This document shows, piece after piece, positions 9,763 through 34,638 of a stretch of 64,000 nt of DNA. Under the pieces are notes generated by a model, which saw only the letters and a list, made by a program, of their open reading frames with translations, made no database searches and was not told where the DNA came from. Numbering within the stretch: the stretch's first letter is position 1; each line of letters begins with the position of its first letter. The position numbers were made by a program, and so were the translations under genes. Source of the stretch: Selaginella moellendorffii (Eukaryota; Plantae; Lycopodiophyta); NCBI RefSeq assembly GCF_000143415.4, contig NW_003314269.1:1619544-1683543 (forward strand), read 5' to 3'.

Positions 9763-10185
9763 GACAAGTCGAGGGGTCCTATAATCGTGAGGATCAAGCT
9801 GCACAAGAAGGGATATGCAGTCAAAGAACCCTGCAAGGATCACTGCAAAGATCAAGTCGCGAGGATTGAGCTCCACAAAGAAAACAAGGAAAGCAGTAAG
9901 ACAGTGGTAAGGGCGATCAAGCCTTGCAACACAGCAAGAAAGGCGTCACAGCAGCGGAGGAGTCTTAAGGTGCTTGAGACGAGCGCTAGCATGAAAATCG
10001 AGTGTGAGCCAGTGAAGAAGGTGCTCAATGCTAGGTCCTTGAATGTACCATTGGGCGATGCTGTGAAGAGACGAGAGGAACGGGGCGTTCACTATCTTGA
10101 TTTTGGTGTTGGTGATGGGTGTGTTGCTCGTTTCACAGCTCCAAAGATCAAGTGGAACCCCATGCGCACCACCACTCGCACATGA
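9352..10185 (+). CDS. Orphan K/E-rich protein with a 70-aa tandem N-terminal repeat
   Basis: Intronless ORF from ATG 9352 with a charged composition and a codon-preserving 210-bp duplication. No family recognised. Confidence 0.6.
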   Translation: MASTFVEMHGGMPVTKELIVDNDELMEALAEAAEAHKKREREEEHKDGQPLKKVRRDDIREEPCKDQGQKMPSTFVEMHGGMPVIKELIVDNDELMEALAEAGEASKKREREEECKDGQPLKKVRRNDAREEPCKDQDKSRGPIIVRIKLHKKGYAVKEPCKDHCKDQVARIELHKENKESSKTVVRAIKPCNTARKASQQRRSLKVLETSASMKIECEPVKKVLNARSLNVPLGDAVKRREERGVHYLDFGVGDGCVARFTAPKIKWNPMRTTTRT

Positions 10186-10249
10186 TTTTCGTTAATGTTG
10201 CAAAATAATTATTATTATATGTCTTTCATACTTTAATAATTAACATTAT

Positions 10250-12940
10250 ATCTTTGTCTCGCTTCTTGCGATTGGTATTTTTGTCTCGCTCCTAGCAATT
10301 GGTGGCTTTATCTTGCTTTTAGCGATTGGAGCTTTTGTCTCATTTCGAATATTTTTCTTGCCCTCGTTTCCAATGATGGGTTTCAATGTCTGCTCTACAA
10401 GAGCGCGTCATATATACTATACTTTAAATATTTTATACATAATATATTTTCTAAAGTTGAGATGATTTAGTTTTGATATTCAACAATTTTAAAACGTTTT
10501 ATTGATAAAAAATTAATATTTTATGTAGTCTATAATTAATTGGTAGAAGAGGATAATAGTTGCAAAGATTAGATAAATTTGCTTGCATACAATAATAAGC
10601 AGCATAGTAAAAAATAATAAGTTAAAAGACACAATCTTTTATATAGACAAACTCATTAATTATTCACTTTTGTTACTTACAATTTATCACATTACTTTCC
10701 TAAAAGAGTTACTCTTTTAATACCCTACCCCTTAGAAGAAATATCAATTTCAATATATAACCAACTAATAAAATCAAACCTAAGACCTTTCTAATACCAT
10801 TATCATAAATTTTACTTTATTCTTCACTAGTAGTACTTTTGATATATGTTATGGATAATATCTTTGTTTTAAACAGTTTTTTTGTTTTAAAAAAATGTTT
10901 GAAATCAAGTTTTTTTAGTATTTACATTGGTGCTCTTTGTGATTTTTGCATTTGTTTTGCATAAATTTTTAGTGGAAGAACAATTAATAAGCTAAAAGAC
11001 TAAATAAAATAAAAAATATTAAATGGTCTTAGATCTAATCCTTATAATTTAGAATTTATGTCGAGAGTGAATATAAAACATATACACTTAACTTTTTCCT
11101 TAATTGATATAAATAATTACTTCTTTAATTGCAATGCCTTTGAGTTTTGTCCTATATTATTTCTTTAATTGCTTTATCTTTGCTAAAGATTTATGCTTGT
11201 AAGGTATTCTTTGTTTTTTTAACAATTTAAATTAAATATTAATATTTTTTAAACATAGATAAAATAGAGCTCATATTAAAAAATATGATATATGATTAAG
11301 CATATAAATATTTTTCAACAAAATAAATAATAATACTTGAACAATAGTTTTATGCTATAATCTACTATTAAAGGAAAAAAATATAAAAACTTTATTCAAA
11401 ATTTTATTGAATTGATGAAAATATATTTTAATTCAAACTTTTGCTAAATGAGCAAATTATAATATGGGTTTTATAAATAACTATTTATGTTACACCATAA
11501 TATTCTACTAAAAAAATATCTCTCTCATGCCACATTATGCATTAGCGGTTTAAGATACTTTGTCTAGCATTAGTTTAGAAATTTTTACTTGCAACAAATG
11601 AAAATAATTAAACACTACTAATATGAAATTTCATGCTATGTTATGCTATATAAGTATACTTTGAAATACAATCCATTATTTTTTTGTAATATTTGATAAA
11701 TCACCATATAAACTGTTTTGAGTTCATTGGTAAATTCCATTAGATATAAAAAATCTAATATAAACAAGTAATATAAATGCTCTTGAAAATTCTTCTTTGC
11801 CTTAATTTTATAAAGAGGTAGTGGTTTTAGAGGCTCAACCATGAAGGCATCCTTGCAAACCAAGTGGATATTAATATAGTGGAGATTTATGCTATGGCAT
11901 GAGGTTACACTTGAGGATATTTGGATCTCAACTTTAATAACTATGTCACTGTGAAAAACATGCTCATTAATATTTTGAAAGGTTGGTTAGCAAACTTGTA
12001 GGTGGTAGTGGATATACCTAAAATATGCTTTGATATTCTAAGGGTTTTCTACCGTTGTTATTCATTTAGATTAATCTTGTATTTATAATTTACAAACTTT
12101 CCTAAACACTTCCTAGTATATTCTAATTTATTCTACCATCTAATGGTATTGATATTCAATAAGATTAATCTTGTGTTTATAAATTGTAAACATTTTTATA
12201 ATCTTATATTAACTATATTATTAAATCTACAGAAAATTATTACTAATGTGGTAATAAAAAATTTCACTCATAAATCTTAAACATTTATTCTTGCTTATAT
12301 ATATAAAAAAACTTTTTACAAAACAAGCTAAGAGACATACTTTGGAAAAGATAGTGATTTTTGCAACCTTGCAATGTAGCATGTTCCTAACTTATAGCTA
12401 AATACATTGGATTGCATCACCCTCTTGGTTGGGGCAATACTACTAACTTTTTTGACAAGTTTGATTTGTTTTCTAAGTCTTCCTCTTCAGCTTCTTGTCT
12501 TTTTGAGAGTTTTGATTTTATACTACATGATTTGTCAAGCTTTTGCAACTTTTTTGTGAAAATGGTGGATTATTTTATTGTTCTGGGACCAACAATAGAG
12601 AGAAGAATGAAAGTGAGTAGGTCACTCATGTGTGACAATCAATATGTGATGCACCAGCATCAACCTCGAGGGCATAGAGAGCCAAGTCCAACCCAAAAAA
12701 GACCGAAAAGCCGTATTGTAATATCATTGACCATGCTAAGAATATTGTGATTACAGTCCAACGTATGCAATTGTATCCAAAGGTGAGTTGCCAGTATTTC
12801 CAATCAAGTCTGTCACTCTCTAGTAGCAATCTAATGATAGCACTTTTGAAGGAGAGGATTACTCACTCTTCGCAATCACCCGAGCCAGAATGTAGCTCTT
12901 GGTTCAAAGTCACATTTGCAATAAAATCTAATATGCCAAT
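10250..12940. mobile_element. Very AT-rich tract, probably a degenerate DNA transposon (hAT-like trace)
   Basis: Abrupt AT enrichment, no intact ORF and a short repeat array at the left edge. Minus-strand fragments LRSKYPQV and NIHLVCKDAF near 11850-11930 loosely resemble the hAT HCxxHxLxLxxxD region. Confidence 0.3.
10251..10348. repeat. Short imperfect tandem array, ~27-28 bp units, about 3.5 copies
   Basis: Units TTTGTCTCGCTTCTTGCGATTGG, TTTGTCTCGCTCCTAGCAATTGG, TTTATCTTGCTTTTAGCGATTGG and a partial TTTTGTCTC. Confidence 0.8.
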
Positions 12941-24897: not shown

Positions 24898-25988
24898 ATG
24901 GCTGGAAGGCGCGGCGGTCGTAGCAACGGGATGCTCCTCATGCTGGCGCTTCACGTTTTCTCGCAGTTCGTCCAGCTCGAGAGGAAGCCGCCGGTTACGG
25001 CGGCGCTGATTCTCGCGAATGTGATCGTCTATCTGCGCCCTGGGAGCCTGCACGAGGTTTTGCCATCGATCGAGGAGGTCTGCCTCAGTCCCTACCTTGT
25101 TCTCCGGGTAAGCGCTCGTAATCCTCTTGAGAATCCCCCGGTTTGATCGAGATTTCGCAGAATTTCGATGTGAAGCGCTTGCTTCTCTCGGCTTTCTACC
25201 ACGTCGACGAAGCGCACCTGTTCTACAACATGATCTCACTGCTCTGGAAGGGCGTCCAGCTCGAAGGTAGAATGGGAAGCCCGAAATTCGCGTCCATGGT
25301 GGCTCTCCTCCTGGGGATGTCTCACGGCTTGATGGTGTTGCTGGGAACGCTCGTCTCGACCCTGACCGATTCGCCTGCGCCTTACACGTCCTGTGCCGTG
25401 GGATTCTCGGCGCTTCTCTTCGCTCTCAAGGTAGTCCTCAATCACAACTCTCCAGCCAACGCCATCGTCTATGGCTTCGTAGTACCAGCGAGGTTTGCAG
25501 CATGGGCAGAGCTCGTTCTCGTCCAGATGTTCATGCCAGGCGCCTCGTTCTTGGGCCACCTCTCCGGAATTCTAGCAGGGCTGCTCTACGTACGTGCTCC
25601 CAGGTTCTTCTCCAGTGGCATCGGGGCTCTCGTAAGAAGATCGGCGAACTGGTCGTGGATGGTGACTAGGCCGCTGTGGTTCTTACTGGGACGACCATCG
25701 CCACCGCCGTCTCGTCGCTTCGGTGGAGGATCTGTGGGATCCAGGAATGAAGGTGGCGGAAGTGGAGGCGGGCTAAGTTTTCAGATGTGGAGGTGTCGAG
25801 CTTGCACGTACGAAAACTGGGAGCCTGCCGACAGCTGTGAGATGTGTGGAACTCCGAGGTCTGGTGGCGGCAACAGTTCCTTCAGCCCGACGGCTCCGCC
25901 GTGGCCACAGCATGAACCGCTGCCTGGCTCGCCGCAAACTTCTGCCGAGGCCATACGGCAGGCACGTATTGCAAGATTTACGAGGTGA
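24898..25988 (+). CDS. RBL14: Rhomboid-like protease with C-terminal RanBP2-type zinc finger (RBL14-like)
   Basis: KPPVTAALI, HLFYNM, catalytic GFS, ASFLGHLSGI and WRCRACTYEN...CEMC. One intron at ~25108-25160. Confidence 0.88.
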
Positions 25989-26301: not shown

Positions 26302-28044
26302 ATGGGCTTTTGCGGTGGTGTGCTACTCGTCGTCCTCACTGTGCTCTTGGCATCGTCAATGCGAGCAAGACCGACGGCATTTAGCTGCAAGTGTCTACCT
26401 TCTGATGACTGCTGGCCCGACTCAAGCGCCTGGCAGGCTCTCAATGCGTCCATTGATGGGCAGCTCGTAGCTTCGAAACCGCCGGCTTGGCCGTGCCACG
26501 AGCCCGAGTACAACGCTCTGCAGTGCCTCGAGGTGACGCAGAAATGGAGCGATGCGTTTTGGAGAGCTGCGCAGCCCGGTGCCATGCAAGACTCCTTCTT
26601 CGAGATGGATGGCAACGAAGGTTGCCTTCTCTCCGGGAACAAGAAAAGTAGCTGCTATCAAGGGCGGGTCTCGGTGTTTGCCGTCAACGTGTCGAGCGCA
26701 TCGCACGTCCAGAGAGCTGTGGAATTTGCCGCGACTTACAACCTTCGTGTGACCGTCAAGAACACGGGTCACGACTACTTTGGACGCAGCAACGCAGCGG
26801 GGTCGCTTAGCATATGGACGCACCACCTCAAGGATATTTCTTTCGTCGAGGAGTTTGTTCCAGAGGGATGCAACAGCTCGGCTGCTCGATCCGGCGTGAC
26901 AATTGGAGCAGGAGTTGTGTGGGAGGAGCTCTACCGCGCTGCCGACGCGCATGGGAAAGTCATAGCTGGTGCTCAGTGTTCCTCGGTTGGAGCTGCCGGA
27001 GGCTATCCTCAAGCCGCGGGGCACAGTCCTCTGTCACCCAAGTACGGCCTCTCGGCGGACAACGTTCTCCAGTACAAGGTCGTGACGGCGGACGGGAAGC
27101 TGGTGGTGGCGAATGCCTGCCAGAACAAGGACCTGTTCTGGGCTCTTCGTGGCGGCGGCGGAGGAACTTTCGGTGTCGTGGTTTCCGTGACTCACGCGAC
27201 TCATCCTGCGCTGGAGAGCTTGCAGTTTGCCTCGTACGTTGTCGGCGCCAACACTTCCGAGAGCTTTGAGCTGGTCGTCACGGAGTTCGTCAAGAGCAAT
27301 CCGGGCCTGTCCCAGGACGGATGGGGTGGCTTCTTCCTCATCGCCAAGCGGGCGCTCATCGTCCAGTACCTTCTTCCAGACAAGAACTCCTCCTTTGCGC
27401 AGAGCTCGTTTGATCCATTCCTCTCGGAGGCGAGGGGCATCGCCGGCGTGAGCGTCAACGGGGCAATGCAGAGCTTCTCCTCCTACCTCAAGTGGCACGA
27501 GGCCGTCCAGTGCTCCAAGTCCGGCTGCTCCTTCGCAACTGGCTCCTCGGAGCTGCTGGTGTCGAGATTGATCCCGAGCAGCACCTTTAGCGACGATCCG
27601 GAGGAGCTGGCACAGACTCTAGTCGGGATTTGGGACGAGGGATACGATCGAGTCATGGGGTACTTGACCGCGGGTGGCGAGGTTTCAGTGGCTCGAGACA
27701 ACGCAGTGAATCCGGCATGGAGGGAAGCGCTGTGGCACATCATAGTCGTGAAGCTCTTCCCTGCCAACGAGACCCAGGCGGCGAAGAAGTCTCTTGCTCG
27801 CGCCATCACCAAGACCGGGGGCCGGCTGAGGAGAGTGGCGCCATCCTCGGGCTGCTATCTCAACGAGGCGGATGTTAACGAGCCGGACTGGCAGCAGGCA
27901 TTCTTTGGCGACAAGTATGACAAGCTCAAGCTCATCAAGGAGGCTGTCGATCCGCAGGGCCTGTTTGTGTGCAAGAAGTGCGTTGGGAGCGAGGATTGGA
28001 GCGAGGATCTGACGTGTAGAAGCAAGAAGAAATGTAGAACTTGA
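26302..28044 (+). CDS. Secreted FAD-linked oxidoreductase (BBE-like/VAO superfamily), fungal type, intronless
   Basis: Signal peptide, CKCLPSDDCWP, KNTGHDYFGRS (FAD-binding His), GAQCSSVGAAGGY, DLFWALRGGGGGTFGVV, YLNEAD...KEAVDPQGLF and CVGSEDW. Confidence 0.93.
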   Translation: MGFCGGVLLVVLTVLLASSMRARPTAFSCKCLPSDDCWPDSSAWQALNASIDGQLVASKPPAWPCHEPEYNALQCLEVTQKWSDAFWRAAQPGAMQDSFFEMDGNEGCLLSGNKKSSCYQGRVSVFAVNVSSASHVQRAVEFAATYNLRVTVKNTGHDYFGRSNAAGSLSIWTHHLKDISFVEEFVPEGCNSSAARSGVTIGAGVVWEELYRAADAHGKVIAGAQCSSVGAAGGYPQAAGHSPLSPKYGLSADNVLQYKVVTADGKLVVANACQNKDLFWALRGGGGGTFGVVVSVTHATHPALESLQFASYVVGANTSESFELVVTEFVKSNPGLSQDGWGGFFLIAKRALIVQYLLPDKNSSFAQSSFDPFLSEARGIAGVSVNGAMQSFSSYLKWHEAVQCSKSGCSFATGSSELLVSRLIPSSTFSDDPEELAQTLVGIWDEGYDRVMGYLTAGGEVSVARDNAVNPAWREALWHIIVVKLFPANETQAAKKSLARAITKTGGRLRRVAPSSGCYLNEADVNEPDWQQAFFGDKYDKLKLIKEAVDPQGLFVCKKCVGSEDWSEDLTCRSKKKCRT

Positions 28045-28101
28045 GAGAAGGACTCTCCAAATCTAAAAAGTTGATAGTATTGTCTCGGCCTGGGTTGTCT
28101 G

Positions 28102-28165
28102 GTATATTCATTGAATATACTTAGAAATTATTCGGTGAATAAACCAGAAATTATTCAATGAATAG
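28102..28165. repeat. Array of three TATTC-N3-GAATA palindromes
   Basis: GTATATTCA-T-TGAATATAC (28102-28120), then AGAAATTATTCGGTGAATA (28123) and AGAAATTATTCAATGAATA (28146). Confidence 0.8.
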
Positions 28166-28177
28166 GTTTCGGGTTTG

Positions 28178-29035
28178 ATGGCGGTGAATAGGCGATGCAA
28201 ATCAGGTTCCGAGTGGACAGAAACTCAGGTAAATTACTTTAAGATGGAGATTGCCCAGGAAAGAGAGTTTCGCTCGTTTTTCGGGGTAGAACCTCCGCAG
28301 ATGTTCAACGAGGACGTGAGTGAGTTTCTGGGTTTAGACTTGAGCGATGTCATGCTGCAGTCGACGATACAAATCCGACACATAAGGTCTCGCTTCGTCA
28401 AGCTCCTGGTCAAGCACATAATCGCAGTGACCAAAACACACAGGCACGAAGAGTCGGCCGTGGAAGACATGTCAACCTCACTCCTGGAGCTGTTTGAGTA
28501 CGATGGCGACGACAATTCGGTGCGCAGCAGATGTACCCTGGATCTCTTCATGTCCAACGCCAAAACTCAAGCAACCCCTGATGTTCTCATCGAGAGATTG
28601 GACACCGCAATCAAGCTACTGGTTCAAGAAGACAAAAGCTACGATGTAGGCCATCATCCAGAAGCACAATTGATGGCAGAGGCGGTTGCAGCATACCAGG
28701 AGAACAGGCGCTTGTACGAAAGGCTGGGAAGGGAAGATTTTCCGGACCAGCAGACGATTCCAGGCATTGTCATGCTAGGTAAGTACTTGGTATTTCGTTT
28801 GATCGAGCTATAGCCACATTGTTCTTCAGGTACTTGTCCTACCTTTTACGTCATCCCAATGACGAAAGCTCTGGCCGACTGTGTGAGAAATGGAGATGAG
28901 CCCACTCTAGTCACCCGGGTCAAGAAGTATGTCATTCCCAATCTCCCTGCCAGCAAATCCGATACAATGCTTTCCAGGCAGCACCGCCATCACATTGCTC
29001 AGTGCTTGGAGGCATTCAAAGCCTTCGTTGAGTAG
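28178..29035 (+). CDS. Uncharacterised 268-aa protein with a PD-(D/E)XK-like motif; join(28178..28778,28830..29035)
   Basis: A 51-bp phase-1 GT-AG intron joins ...GIVMLG to TCPTFYVIP...CLEAFKAFVE*. Motifs KSGSEWT, EESAVED, TPDV, LLVQEDK and PEAQLMAEAVAAYQ. Confidence 0.75.
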
Positions 29036-29339: not shown

Positions 29340-31260
29340 TTTAGTTTTCTACCAATTACCTTAAAGAAGTATAGCCTAAACTGGCTCGAAACTAGGTGAA
29401 GTATTTTTTTATTTCTCCTTCTACTCTATGATCTCAAATAAAGAAGTGATCCATCTCAATGTGTTTTGTTCTAGCATGAAAGATCAGATTTTCAATCATG
29501 CTAAAGTTGACGTATTGTTATTGTAGACAATTGGGTTTTAAACATGGACGTCCAATATTTGCTAGAAGTCTTCTCAATCAAATTGCTTCTTTTGTGATAT
29601 TTGCATTGTATTCAGCTTCACATGTTGAAAGAGTAATTTGTTTTCTTTTTTCCATGACCAAGAGACAACAACTCCACACATTTCCACTTTTGGACTCCAA
29701 TTGTCAAGATCACCTGCTAAATTTGCATTGGTAAGGCTGATGACTTCAGAAGCTTTAAGACCAGAGTAGACAATCCAAATTTTGGATGTACCTTGGAGAT
29801 AGTTTAGAATTCTACATGCCGCATACCTGGATTATTTAAGAAACGCCTCATATTTACAACAGTAATAGCAATATCTGGCCTTGTAGCAAGATACATGAGT
29901 GATCCCACAAGATTTTGGTAAGACTTCGTCTGCAAAATCCATTTCTCCCCCTCAGTGCATGGACTATTTGCTTTAGATAGTTTATCATGCAATGCCAGAG
30001 TGGATATAGATTAGTGCTTGCACATGTTTGAATAGCACACAATAATGCCAGTAGTATATTTCTCTTGAAAGAGAACTAATGTGCTGTGCTTAATAGATAC
30101 AATTATTAAGTCATATAAATAAATTGCAATTATAGTTTATGATAAATATAAATATTCCAATCTACTTCAGTGTGAGTGAAGTTTATGGATCATTAATGGT
30201 GTTATACCGGTGATAACATTTTTACAAAAACCAACCCTGCTTTAAGCCATAGCCAGATTTTTGTTATTTCCAAAAAACTCAAAATCTTAAGAAAAGCATT
30301 TCATTTGATGTAATTCCAAGTTTTGAGCTGCAGAGATAGTAAATAATACCCAGATAGATTAGTTTTTGCCACAAAAGATATCTGTGTATAATCAATGCTT
30401 TATTTCTGAGAGTGTTCTTTGATCACAAGACGAACTTTATAATTATCTATATCACTATTTGACATTAACTACTCATCCATGGTTTCAATTCCCAAGATTC
30501 ATTAGCAACCTAATTTCTGAAAGAAGTGCTTAGCATTAAAACTTCTTTAAATGTATGTAGTTCATTTATATCACTGTAAAGATAAAATATATGTAATAAC
30601 TGTCACATAGTTTTTTTTTTCGTGGTTTTAGGACTCTAATAAAACTATTCTTCAAATTTATCTGAATGTGAGTCAAAATTTGAAGTACTTTCCAAAAACG
30701 ACTAATCATGATCAATTTCTTTAATTTGAGTTTGATAGATATATTGAATAAAGGATGTATCTTGTGTCATAAGTATTTATAGACTCATGAGTATCCATTA
30801 TCTAAGTTAAAATAGATTCCAAATAAACACAAAAAACTCTTTGAGACTAAATTATATCCTAATTTAATGTTAAATTTGAAATCCAAGCTTCTGTGCATGC
30901 CATTCATTTTGGATAAGAATTAACAAATCACATACAAATTTTAGCTCATTAAGTTTTATTATCTGTCAAGAGACAATACATCTTGAATCAATTTTCCTTA
31001 TTAGGAATGTATCCTAATAAAATGGAATTTTGTGCTTTATTTTGAAGTTTATATTGACAAACTTCAATTTTTGTTTAGCCCATTATGGCTTTAGTATGAC
31101 TCTACTAATAGTATGAGTTTGAAGTTGATTCTAAACATAAATACTTGTACATCTAGCAAACATCTGTGTGTTTCATGATATATCAAGTGATATTTAAAGT
31201 TAAAAGCTTCTTCCTGCCATTTTTTGGCCATGTTATTTTGGATTTAGACGCTAAAAATGA
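29340..31260 (-). mobile_element. Highly degenerate Ty1/copia retrotransposon relic
   Basis: Minus-strand traces in copia order: HTDVC (integrase, ~31165), ELHTFKEV (~30555), YKVRLV..IDY (RT, ~30430), YQNLVGSLMYLATRPDIA (~29900) and FHARTKHIEMDHFFI (RNase H, ~29460). Many stops and deletions; no LTRs seen. Confidence 0.8.
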
Positions 31261-31399
31261 ATCTCATGCATTAAAAATTCTTGTGATTTAAATTCTCTAG
31301 CATTATCTACTCAAAGTTCTTTGATTGATCAATTAATTATACTTTGGATTTGTATAATCCATGCTTCGGTATGGTTTCTCAGTGCAAATATCCATGATT

Positions 31400-31600
31400 T
31401 ATGATCTCTTGGATCACGATGCTCACGCACGGCAGTCCAAGAATCTCTTCGATCACATCCGGAGATTCGAGTTCCCTCGTCTCCTGCTGTGCTGGACCGT
31501 CGTCACATCCACGGCCATTCTCATGGCATTCGCCAAGAAGGTGTTTGATTTGATGTCCCCAGTGAGAGTGGTAGCAACATACAGCCAGATTCCTCGTTGG
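31400..31600 (+). pseudogene. PPR gene remnant
   Basis: TGGATCACGATGCTCAC, CCAAGAATCTCTTCGATC and GCTGGACCGTCGTCACA are shared with the PPR remnant at 42110-42790, with internal deletions. Confidence 0.7.
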
Positions 31601-31809
31601 TGGCTCTTCTCCTCTCAAGTTCCACCACCAAAAAACTCTAATCTTCGTTTGAGTTCGTCAAGGCGGCTAACGTGAGAAGAACTTCCATCATTTCTCATCA
31701 GGCGAGTTTCATCCTTAGAACTGTGAGAGTTGAACTAAAAAAGCTTTTCGCTGGTCTTTAAGGAAAAGCTTTTGAAAATCTCTTGATTTCAAGTAAGAGC
31801 GAATAGAAG

Positions 31810-32215
31810 GTTTGTCTCATCGACACTCCCGACTTCAAGAACAGTGACATTTTGGGTAGGAGTTTGCTGTCATTCTCTGATTCTTCTTCTTCTCCTAGGG
31901 AAATCAGACCCTTATGCGATCCTCAAGAACTCTCATAGTTTTTTCTCTTATCTAGACCAAAACTTTGTCTTCCATCTTCCAGGGTAGGGTTCCACTCCGA
32001 AGTGGAACGAAAAATTCGTGTTTAGCCTCGAGGGTGAGAGTGATGTTCCTCTGGAGGACGAAAGCTGTTTGAAGGATCACGTCATTGGCAATGATGATTT
32101 CATTGGGACTGTTAAGAAAGCTTTGTTTCTTTTTTCTCTGTCTTTGTTTTTTAGAGAGAGTATTAACATTTTTTTCAGCTCTGGGACAACCAAGGCAAAG
32201 TCAAACTCTCCATGA
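31810..32215 (+). pseudogene. Small C2-domain protein remnant
   Basis: Spliced pieces FKNSDIL|GKSDPYAIL, GSTPKWNEKFVFSL and DHVIGNDDFIGTV; incomplete. Confidence 0.7.
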
Positions 32216-32337
32216 AGTTCAAATATTTATTAGTAGAATTTGGGTTGGACTTCTCTTCTGATTCCATGTTCGATCATGTGGCCAATTGAGATTGGTGGAC
32301 TTTTACATATACTGTAAGCATATTGCTAGGCATTCTA

Positions 32338-34638
32338 ATGGATCCATGGAGGCTGCTTGCTCTTGTCCTGCTTGCTGTCACAATTGTTTTTCATGCAAGT
32401 GCTGAAGATTCAGAGGTTGAAGCACTCTTAAGCTTTAAACTTTCTGTGGATGATCCTCTTGGGGCACTGAATAACTGGAAGGCGGGCACAAACGTTTGCC
32501 ACTGGATTGGTGTAAGTTGTTCCTCAGTAGGGCGGATCACTGGCATACAGATTGATTCTCTGTCACTTTCGGGCCTTTTTCCACTTTCAACAATCCAAGC
32601 CCTGCCTCAACTACGCAATTTGTCTGCTTCGGGGAACAACTTCACTGAGATCAACATATCACCGCAGAAATGCTCTTTGGAGTTCCTCAATTTGTCAAGC
32701 AACGATTTCACTAGTCATTTTCTAGATATTCTTTTGGTTACTTGCAAAGGCATCAGGCACTTGAACCTCTCACACAACAAGCTAAGAGAAATTTCGCTGA
32801 AGGGATCAATCGGGCATGTTATGGTTTCGGTTGATTTATCTCACAACAGAATCAGTGGCTCAATACCTGCTTCCTTTTTCGCATCGTGCAAGAGCTTGCG
32901 GTTTCTAGACATATCGAGCAATCAGCTGGTTGGAGGGGTGCCTGAAGATATGTTTATAAACTGCAGAAGCTTACAAGAGCTTTCATTGTCGTCGAATAAT
33001 CTGACAGGGGAACTTTCTGGTCTACGTTCATCCACCAGTCTTCAGAAGCTCAACCTGTCTACCAACTTCTTCACAACATTTCAGATAGACCACTGTCCTA
33101 GTCTGGAGGAGCTGGATCTCTCGTTTAACAACATTTCTGGGACAGTTTTTCGGAAGGATTGTGCTGCTTTGAAGATGCTCAATCTATCAGACAATCACTT
33201 ATCTGGACCATTCCTCTCGGTATTTGCCAATCGAAGTTTAGCTACGGTTTTTAAGTCTCTTCAAGTTCTCCAAGCCGACCACAACAACTTTATAGGTGAA
33301 CTCCCTACAGTTCCTCCAAGTCTTAAGGTTCTAGACCTGAGCTGCAACTTGTTCAACACTGGCAACCCAAGCATCTGCCCTGCAAGGTCCTCACTTAAGT
33401 CTTTGCTGCTGATATATAACAGGTTGCATGGTCGGGTTCTGAACTCAGCCATGAACTGTGGTAATCTGGAAATGCTTGATATGAGCATCAATTCTCTAGC
33501 AGGGCCCATTCCAGTGGATATGTGCAGCAGACTCCCGAAGCTTCAACATCTTCTTCTTTGGGGGAACAATCTTGAAGGCAGCATACCCGCTACAATCAGC
33601 AACTGTAGTGAGCTGGTGACACTAAATCTCAGTTTTAACAATATCACAGGCGTCATTCCTCAGCAAATATCTAGGCTGAAGAAACTCAGCCTGCTGTTTC
33701 TGAGCAACAACATGATATCTGGAGCAATCCCGGCATCTATTGGAAGTATGCTGAGCCTTCGATCTCTTTTACTGAGTCACAACAAGCTTCAGGGTGGCCT
33801 ACCAAGCGAGCTGAGGAACAGCAACGTTCTAGTCCTGCTTTTAGTGAACGACAATCAGTTGACAGGACAAATTCCAAGCTGGATCGGCCGCTCATCAGTC
33901 GTGGAAGAGGATGAAATAACCGAAATAACCTTCCCGTTTCTGATGGTGTTTGCAATCAACATAGAGGCATCCATCTGCAAAGCTTATGAGGAGGTTTTCA
34001 TACTGCAAGGGATCCGCTTGGATGACTTTGAGCAACTTCCGTTTGCAACCAGATGCAGAAGATGGTTCTTTCTGGCACCTCCTGGTTTCAACTTAACAAT
34101 ATATAATCTGGTAAACAGTCCTTTGGCTATTGATCTCTCGCACAACAGCTTCACTGGAACAATCCCAGAGGAATTCGGTGGCATGCAAGACTTAAATGTG
34201 CTAAATCTCGCACACAACTTACTTACAGGGGCCATTCCTTCCACAATTGGAAACCTCAAGAACCTGGAGTGGCTAGATTTATCACAGAACTGGCTTGAAT
34301 CACACATCCCGGACTCGCTTGGCAACCTCACCTTCCTGAAATACTTAAACATCTCGAACAACAAGCTTCTCGGAAGGGTTCCACAGAGTGCTCAGCTTGC
34401 ATTATTCCCGGTGAGCAGCTATGAAGGAAACCCAGGCCTTTGTGGCTTCCCCCTTGCAGAGTGTGCTGGTTTGCATAATCCTTTCCATGGCGATCACACA
34501 GATGAAGACAGTGATGATGGACATGGTGATGAAACGATTCTGGCTGCCATTGTTGGTGGTGGTGTTTCATGCATACTATGGACTTTTGGAGTTTTTTTCA
34601 GTAAGAGATGGGAGGCACTGCTTAAACGTTTAATATAA
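32338..34638 (+). CDS. LRR receptor-like protein (no kinase domain), intronless
   Basis: Signal peptide, CHWIGVSC cap, many LxLSxNxLxGxIP repeats, an island region, YEGNPGLCG cap, acidic juxtamembrane stretch, transmembrane helix and short tail. Confidence 0.92.
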   Translation: MDPWRLLALVLLAVTIVFHASAEDSEVEALLSFKLSVDDPLGALNNWKAGTNVCHWIGVSCSSVGRITGIQIDSLSLSGLFPLSTIQALPQLRNLSASGNNFTEINISPQKCSLEFLNLSSNDFTSHFLDILLVTCKGIRHLNLSHNKLREISLKGSIGHVMVSVDLSHNRISGSIPASFFASCKSLRFLDISSNQLVGGVPEDMFINCRSLQELSLSSNNLTGELSGLRSSTSLQKLNLSTNFFTTFQIDHCPSLEELDLSFNNISGTVFRKDCAALKMLNLSDNHLSGPFLSVFANRSLATVFKSLQVLQADHNNFIGELPTVPPSLKVLDLSCNLFNTGNPSICPARSSLKSLLLIYNRLHGRVLNSAMNCGNLEMLDMSINSLAGPIPVDMCSRLPKLQHLLLWGNNLEGSIPATISNCSELVTLNLSFNNITGVIPQQISRLKKLSLLFLSNNMISGAIPASIGSMLSLRSLLLSHNKLQGGLPSELRNSNVLVLLLVNDNQLTGQIPSWIGRSSVVEEDEITEITFPFLMVFAINIEASICKAYEEVFILQGIRLDDFEQLPFATRCRRWFFLAPPGFNLTIYNLVNSPLAIDLSHNSFTGTIPEEFGGMQDLNVLNLAHNLLTGAIPSTIGNLKNLEWLDLSQNWLESHIPDSLGNLTFLKYLNISNNKLLGRVPQSAQLALFPVSSYEGNPGLCGFPLAECAGLHNPFHGDHTDEDSDDGHGDETILAAIVGGGVSCILWTFGVFFSKRWEALLKRLI

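Follow-up and report, generated by a model that had tools for sequence, protein, structure and literature searches.

Flavoprotein oxidases of the VAO/BBE family have been described in the fungus Myceliophthora thermophila as MtVAO615 and MtVAO713 (PDB 6F72 and 6F74). In MtVAO615, flavin adenine dinucleotide (FAD) is tethered bicovalently through His157 and Cys222 (8-alpha-N1-histidyl and 6-S-cysteinyl linkages); this enzyme and its relatives are predicted to be secreted, and it has no known substrate (PMC6017366). Two gene families resembling those of nucleocytoplasmic large DNA viruses (NCLDV) were reported in the lycophyte Selaginella moellendorffii by Maumus et al. (2014), namely, an exoribonuclease (EFJ26844) and an unknown protein (EFJ10148) (PMC4083422). 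Here, we report two adjacent genes from a 64-kb window (the whole stretch of S. moellendorffii DNA that was analyzed), an oxidase of the MtVAO615 type (gene 1) and a predicted PD-(D/E)xK nuclease-fold gene (gene 2) with its nearest relatives on giant-virus-like contigs. Both probably have a foreign origin and would have arrived long ago by separate events, and they now lie side by side in an ordinary Selaginella gene neighborhood; two histories that looked like one are thereby separated.

The window belongs to scaffold GL377573.1 (12 kb around gene 1 identical at 100%; the annotated stretch is labeled L008 here), and a second assembled haplotype is represented by scaffold GL377565.1 (L009). 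Gene 1 (positions 26302 to 28044) is followed by gene 2 (from 28178), both on the forward strand, with a 133-bp spacer between them (28045 to 28177). An original prediction made from the letters of the window had described two same-strand genes at exactly this distance and had proposed a module acquired from fungi. The coordinates proved exact, and the linkage was confirmed, as the pair recurs in the same order on GL377565.1 at 98.5% nucleotide identity; the physical linkage is therefore real and not an assembly artifact. Gene 2 loci used for comparison came from Selaginella (L001, L002, and L012), viral-like metagenome contigs (L003 to L007, L010, and L011), and Lactarius (L013).

Gene 1 is an uninterrupted, intronless open reading frame (ORF) encoding a 580-aa VAO/BBE-family flavoprotein oxidase of the putatively secreted type, recognized from the ORF, Pfam domains, the match to MtVAO615, and RNA-type contigs. 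The protein carries an FAD_binding_4 domain (PF01565, PCMH-type; 1.2e-21, residues 128 to 269) and a C-terminal BBE domain (PF08031; 2.6e-10, residues 518 to 556) and shares 99 to 100% identity with proteins annotated in Selaginella (XP_002961034-like, under the name “FAD-linked oxidoreductase ARB_02478”). The closest solved structures were fungal, with MtVAO615 (6F72) matching over residues 27 to 573 (3e-77) and MtVAO713 at 1e-72. The likeness runs over the full length, including the Cys-rich N-terminal extension, and takes in the FAD_binding_4 plus BBE architecture, the putatively secretory N terminus, and the FAD-tethering residues: His157 (NTGHD) and Cys226 (AQCSSVG) of gene 1 align with the FAD-linking His157 and Cys222 of MtVAO615. 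Unlike the two Myceliophthora enzymes, gene 1 is a plant nuclear gene, and its family occurs in Selaginella and ferns. Seed-plant BBE-like proteins (AtBBE-like 15 [4UD8], Phl p 4, EcBBE, and THCA synthase) share the superfamily, the domain pair, and covalent FAD but match gene 1 at 1e-21 or weaker and over the FAD-binding domain alone, and gene 1 lies outside that plant lineage. These comparisons support a fungal-type rather than a seed-plant BBE-type protein, as the prediction had read from fungal-type signatures in the oxidase.

The N terminus of gene 1 is hydrophobic (positions 26302 to 26367, forward strand; mean Kyte-Doolittle hydropathy of 2.3 over residues 5 to 19) and is probably a signal peptide with a putative cleavage site. 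Together with 18 Cys residues, 6 N-glycosylation sequons, and the fungal relatives, it fits a secreted enzyme. Because MtVAO615 has no known substrate, the reaction class alone can be predicted for gene 1, that of an O2-dependent oxidase releasing H2O2; the product would most likely oxidize an alcohol, a sugar, or a secondary metabolite in the apoplast.

Relatives of the oxidase were collected by word search, and the best 120 of 2939 matches were considered. They included at least 14 Selaginella sequences (41 to 53% identity to gene 1), the ferns Adiantum and Ceratopteris, and bdelloid rotifers, and the best non-plant matches were to Calcarisporiella, Basidiobolus, and Mortierellomycotina, including Mortierella (44 to 49%). 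In a tree of 70 sequences, the window copy fell within an 11-sequence Selaginella clade (Shimodaira-Hasegawa-like approximate likelihood ratio test [SH-aLRT], 98), and 13 Selaginella and 5 fern sequences formed one clade (87). This plant clade was placed within a group (91) containing Mortierellomycotina, Calcarisporiella, Basidiobolus, and the rotifers, with Umbelopsis, Dikarya, and chytrids outside. Since the window oxidase sits deep inside the Selaginella clade, among members that are 50% identical to it or less, it is an in-plant duplicate and no fresh import. The simplest reading is a single old fungus-to-vascular-plant transfer followed by duplication within the plant, with an early vascular plant as the most likely recipient; gene 1 would then be one of about 10 or more loci of a secreted, MtVAO615-like family with bicovalent FAD. 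In the literature searched, we found no paper describing this oxidase family as horizontally transferred in lycophytes or ferns. The locus reported here adds a member to a fungal-type, putatively secreted family that, among plants, appeared in lycophytes and ferns alone within these best matches, and the family is a candidate for ancient fungus-to-plant transfer.

Some features of the data limit this reading. No seed plant or bryophyte appeared among the best 120 of the 2939 matches, and their absence is judged from these matches. The tree was produced by a quick search, with an assumed root (Dikarya plus chytrids). One partial Selaginella oxidase (P0075, on a 0.99-Mb scaffold) fell outside the Selaginella and fern clade, near Umbelopsis; its placement could be a long-branch artifact or could mark a second acquisition.

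Gene 2 consists of exon 1 (28178 to 28778; 200 codons plus 1 base), an intron (28779 to 28829; 51 bp), and exon 2 (28830 to 29035; 67 codons plus stop), all on the forward strand. Exon 1 would supply the N-terminal domain together with the greater part of the PD-(D/E)xK core, with its conserved positions E, PD, and Q-E-D-K, and exon 2 would contribute the final strands of the fold and its C-terminal helices. The intron has GT..AG ends, interrupts a Gly codon in phase 1, and contains an in-frame TAG; its removal restores a block (GIVMLG/TCPTFY) that is continuous in every homologue. Pfam gave no match for the gene 2 exons, the Selaginella paralogues P0121 and P0124, or a divergent viral paralogue.

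The fold of gene 2 was taken from an AlphaFold 2 model of the annotated paralogue P0121 (predicted local distance difference test score [pLDDT], 90), as a proxy for the window protein. The core of the model is restriction-endonuclease-like (Z scores of 9.4 to the BpuSI nuclease domain, 9.3 to DrdV, 7.6 to TT1808/Uma2, and 7.3 to HsdR; root mean square deviation [rmsd] of 3.0 to 3.9 Å). The window protein retains E92, the aspartate of its PD motif, and E151-D152-K153 (Q-E-D-K). These positions are invariant or at least 90% conserved in an alignment of 29 sequences and, in the P0121 model, lie before the strand at 148 to 152 and at the end of the strand at 156 to 163. By this proxy, the gene 2 product qualifies as a PD-(D/E)xK nuclease-fold protein, in agreement with the prediction, and is most likely a metal-dependent endonuclease acting on nucleic acids, with low expression. 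With the known PD-(D/E)xK nucleases (BpuSI, DrdV, the HsdR N-terminal domain, and Uma2/TT1808), it shares the core fold, the acidic residue before one strand, and the E-x-K at the end of the next; unlike them, it belongs to no Pfam or other sequence family, is extended by an N-terminal domain of about 100 residues, and stands without a methylase or translocase partner.

The best whole-protein structural matches of P0121 were mammalian mitoribosomal chains, 3J7Y_5 and 7A5F_s3 (Z scores of 13.2 and 12.4 over 216 to 220 residues; Foldseek E value, 3e-6), which we take to be mL37 and mL65/MRPS30. These large-subunit chains outrank every bacterial nuclease domain and may share a two-domain architecture with P0121. 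They are ribosomal structural proteins, and at an rmsd of 8.6 to 9.5 Å and 8 to 9% identity, the resemblance is at the fold level alone.

A shape search of the ESM Atlas returned full-length twins of gene 2 in uncharacterized families of Basidiomycota and Mucoromycota (TM scores of 0.77 to 0.86; rmsd, 2.5 to 3.1 Å); HSDR_N proteins of cyanobacteria and Crinkler-associated domains of oomycetes also matched, more weakly. These fungal families (e.g., Lactarius EDB83DRAFT_550814) resemble gene 2 in length, whole-protein fold, and feature score (0.97); the Lactarius gene is intronless and solitary and is 29 to 30% identical to gene 2. The predicted likeness of gene 2 to a family expanded in fungi thus stands at the level of the fold and fails for the nearest sequence neighbors, which are viral-like.

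Those neighbors were found by word search with exon 1. The search returned the Selaginella paralogues EFJ26042 and EFJ14584 (60% identity; a third copy is EFJ33210), about 28 metagenome proteins (38 to 57%), and two Lactarius proteins (29 to 30%), and among plants, it returned Selaginella alone. The metagenome contigs are 31 to 97 kb long with a GC content of 35 to 43% and carry dense, short-spaced, mostly ORFan genes. Contigs of this set include ERZ25039592 contig_2741, ERZ26273096 ctg165865, ERZ25070695 ctg130337, and JGI Ga0495356_0000091 and Ga0373634_0001941. Recognizable genes on them encode Rpb1, Rpb2, Rpb5, MutS domains I to V, an XPG-type nuclease, and superfamily II (SFII) helicases, together with a protein kinase, GT61, Kelch, HIRAN, and DUF5757. 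Such gene content is that of Nucleocytoviricota, and we call the contigs giant-virus-like and go no further. In an IMG/VR scan with a tight family alignment, one of the contigs proved to be UViG_3300036715_003133; a scan of IMG/VR with a single viral homologue gave no match. A small gene family of Selaginella thus has its closest relatives on giant-virus-like contigs.

The gene 2 family is multicopy on these contigs and includes paralogues that are about 25% identical. Copies were located at L003 12072 to 13040, L004 11115 to 12095 and 12384 to 13110, L005 16556 to 17401, and L010 16137 to 16514, some of them encoding about 320 aa; on L004, L005, and L007, copies of the family lie 0.5 to 10 kb from the contig end. 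A search with a neighboring SFII helicase yielded 1138 relatives, all of them metagenome proteins, and some homologues of this helicase contain an intein-type Hom_end_hint domain.

In maximum likelihood (ML) trees of gene 2, the three Selaginella sequences were monophyletic (100/97-99) and lay inside a clade with viral-like sequences (91/100, and 96/100 with 17 rows). The Lactarius pair stood apart from the Selaginella and viral-like group on a branch of more than 4 substitutions per site. Gene 2 would then derive from a multicopy PD-(D/E)xK family of giant (Nucleocytoviricota-like) viruses, one copy of which entered the Selaginella lineage. Given the breadth and multicopy state of the family in viruses and its appearance in a single plant lineage, the virus-to-plant direction is the more parsimonious, although it is not proven.

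A number of results pull the other way. Trees with a monophyletic viral-like clade and Selaginella outside it were not rejected by the approximately unbiased (AU) test (P values of 0.31 and 0.23), so the nesting and, with it, the virus-to-plant direction are not statistically secure. Those stretches of the viral-like contigs that were fetched showed no gene for a capsid protein, PolB, or the packaging ATPase (A32). Among known viral proteins (BFVD), generic phage nucleases were the only matches (TM score of 0.36 or less), and no named virus carried the gene 2 family. ORFs on the viral-like loci showed no upstream enrichment of the mimivirus early-promoter motif AAAATTGA, and for this reason, the contigs are given no virus-family assignment. 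A virus that captured a spliced plant mRNA would likewise hold intronless copies.

These results leave room for an origin of gene 2 outside viruses, either by viral capture of the gene from a host that was fungal or resembled a lycophyte, or by donation to both Selaginella and viruses from some fungus or protist not yet sampled. The structural identity of the family with large fungal families and the intronless viral copies, which fit cDNA capture, agree with such a course, as does the outcome of the AU test. We nevertheless think it rather unlikely. The viral-like sequences are many, occur several to a contig, and include the highly divergent paralogues noted above, which together suggest long residence in viruses; the ML tree nests Selaginella among the viral-like rows (96/100); Selaginella was the only plant that turned up; and the fungal sequences are far more distant.

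A viral origin of gene 2 would be followed here by a history inside the plant. The intron is present at the same position and in the same phase in all four Selaginella copies (window, L001, L002, and L012). It is 51 nt long in the window copy and 54 nt long in the other three; the ends are canonical, and the interiors cannot be aligned. It is absent from every viral-like copy and from the Lactarius copy, in which the sequence is continuous. Its size is that of host introns (about 53 nt in the neighboring rhomboid gene) and therefore gives no sign of fungal origin. Because the intron is common to all copies, the two Selaginella subfamilies of gene 2 must have diverged after integration. Between the window copy and its paralogues, the proportions of nonsynonymous and synonymous differences (pN and pS) were 0.24 and 0.73; for exon 2 alone, they were 0.21 and 0.70, from which we conclude that the exon 2 frame is translated. 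A shared intron and a pN far below pS place gene 2, including the spliced-on C terminus, under purifying selection in the plant; synonymous divergence is saturated, so the corresponding ratio of about 0.1 is rough. The GC content at third codon positions (GC3) was 0.58 to 0.61 for gene 2 and 0.71 for the oxidase, with 0.48 to 0.74 for host genes in the window and 0.28 to 0.39 for the viral-like homologues. Gene 2 is host-like in this respect and far from its viral-like homologues, which indicates long residence in the host. The sequence of events would thus be the gain of a short, host-type intron, a drift of GC to the host level, a split into two subfamilies, and purifying selection, and gene 2 is probably a domesticated giant-virus nuclease with a host-gained intron.

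The second subfamily is present as a 1.1-kb unit in L001, L002, and L012 (at about 10001 to 11100 in each), the L001 unit being 95 to 96% identical to each of the others. It lies in gene-poor DNA, and the flanks share repeats of 80 to 90% similarity in different order and orientation; repeat-mediated or transposon-mediated copying may have spread it. At the start of gene 2, a 27-nt indel separates the haplotypes (window 28160 to 28195 versus L009 11870 to 11912) and brings in other in-frame ATGs, so that the first 5 to 6 residues read MAVNRR... or MRRLP..., ahead of a conserved CKSGSEW block.

Gene 2 could also be a decaying relic or a repeat passenger without host function, given its very low expression, its lack of annotation here and mis-merging into a leucine-rich repeat (LRR) model on the other haplotype, the repeat-rich, gene-poor surroundings of the other subfamily, and the indel in its start-codon region. 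We judge this improbable, because both haplotypes and every paralogue keep an open frame, the catalytic positions are kept, splice signals are canonical in all copies, and pN stayed far below pS in both exons as the copies diverged after intron gain.

The families described by Maumus et al. resemble gene 2 in being solitary, with giant-virus affinity, no neighboring viral genes, multiplication in the host, and a ratio of nonsynonymous to synonymous rates (omega) well below 1, and EFJ10148, like gene 2, has relatives in a few fungi and an NCLDV (PMC4083422). Gene 2 and its paralogues (EFJ26042, EFJ14584, and EFJ33210) differ from the accessions named in that study. The shared intron places selection on gene 2 inside the plant, a point that was left open for the exoribonuclease family (PMC4083422), and it argues for selection in the plant and not in the donor virus alone. 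Tentatively, and with somewhat less than even confidence, gene 2 and its paralogues might constitute a third, unreported giant-virus-derived family in Selaginella and the first in which a shared intron reveals in-plant purifying selection, which would make it a viral nuclease genuinely domesticated by a vascular plant, and the site beside an oxidase and an LRR gene might reflect recruitment into a defense locus.

The fungal module of the original prediction, in which the oxidase and the nuclease-fold gene arrived together from a fungus as a two-gene unit, is hardly credible on this evidence. Both genes do have fungal relatives, and they stand 133 bp apart on the same strand in both haplotypes. 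The window oxidase, however, is a duplicate made within the Selaginella clade, and the nearest relatives of gene 2 are viral-like (38 to 57% identity, against about 30% for fungi). By tblastn, no oxidase was found within about 10 kb of the other gene 2 copies (L001, L002, L012, L003 to L007, L010, L011, and Lactarius L013), so the adjacency occurred nowhere else among the loci examined. The two-gene block falls within the host range of composition, and neither gene has an anomaly that would set it apart. A tblastx comparison of the window, L001, and L002 with six viral-like loci found gene 2 alone to be shared, with no inserted viral block. Gene 1 and gene 2 differ in donor, arrival time, and copy history, and the pair is best read as a coincidence in a gene-dense genome. 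What tells against coincidence is that the chance of a given gene 2 locus lying beside one of about 10 oxidase loci is, on a rough estimate, a few in a thousand; coincidence is acceptable only in view of the post hoc choice of this pair out of thousands of windows.

Expression of the two genes was followed in four transcriptome-sized assemblies, the evidence being assembled contigs, which cannot measure or rank expression levels. Contigs cover the oxidase to about position 28038 in 4 of 4 runs, and gene 2 is represented by 204- to 214-nt fragments in 2 of 4. No contig in these assemblies bridges the spacer, and no gene 2 splice junction was seen. All oxidase contigs end at 28036 to 28038, beside a single nucleotide polymorphism between the haplotypes at 28039.

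The spacer (forward strand) holds three copies of a near-palindromic motif, ATTCNNTGAAT, at 28106, 28130, and 28153 (28106 to 28163, spaced 23 to 24 nt), with no other occurrence in the window. All three are kept on the other haplotype, and none is found upstream of the gene 2 paralogues or the viral-like copies; the motif may be a cis-element, at a guess a promoter element for gene 2.

If the two genes had arrived independently and then become functionally linked, they might now act as a coregulated defense pair of an H2O2-producing apoplastic oxidase and a nuclease. The tight, same-strand arrangement in both haplotypes, the conserved triple motif, and the adjoining LRR receptor-like gene would suit such a pair. 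Oxidase RNA in every run, gene 2 fragments in half of them, and an unbridged spacer do not, and the two products, one a secreted oxidase and the other a nuclease that lacks a signal peptide, would occupy different compartments. Elsewhere, gene 2 works, or at any rate survives, with no oxidase beside it. We regard a defense pair as very unlikely and the adjacency as probably functionless. The defense or biotic-interaction role that had been proposed, a “defense island,” is thus unsupported; the adjacency is essentially unique among the loci examined and without signs of coexpression, on expression evidence that is weak. The pair is no new kind of system.

The surroundings of the pair are ordinary plant genes, as had been predicted, with Pfam and annotation in agreement. 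Upstream is a rhomboid protease with a RanBP-type zinc ribbon (24898 to 25988, forward strand; Pfam Rhomboid, 6e-22; annotated, 345 aa, L008 8597 to 9687), with one intron of about 53 nt (span minus coding length). One unbroken RNA-type contig (25900 to 28038) links the rhomboid gene and the oxidase across the 313 bp between them, which could reflect overlapping untranslated regions or read-through transcription. Downstream is an LRR receptor-like protein gene (31361 to 34638, forward strand; Pfam LRRNT_2 and LRR_8; annotated, L008 15060 to 18337). Other ORFs in the window include pentatricopeptide repeat, kinase, LRR, and NIF-phosphatase genes. In the public annotation, gene 2 is uncalled on GL377573.1 and is merged into a 1007-aa LRR model on GL377565.1 (L009 11961 to 16715); the coordinates given here correct both the omission and the fusion.

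Between gene 2 and the LRR receptor-like gene is a stretch (29577 to 30010, reverse strand) that we take, on the strength of its motifs, to be a degenerate Ty1/copia pol fragment, with motifs of the reverse transcriptase end and of RNase H spread over at least two frames. Its stop-to-stop pieces carry ...YLATRPDI... and ...STCEAEY..., and Pfam scored none of them. It had been thought to abut the pair, but it starts about 540 bp beyond the gene 2 stop and does not adjoin gene 2. A 2.1-kb block (29656 to 31770) that contains most of this relic plus very AT-rich DNA (GC content, 0.26 to 0.37) corresponds to about 0.5 kb on the other haplotype, and the two haplotypes have in common just the final 80 nt or so of the relic.

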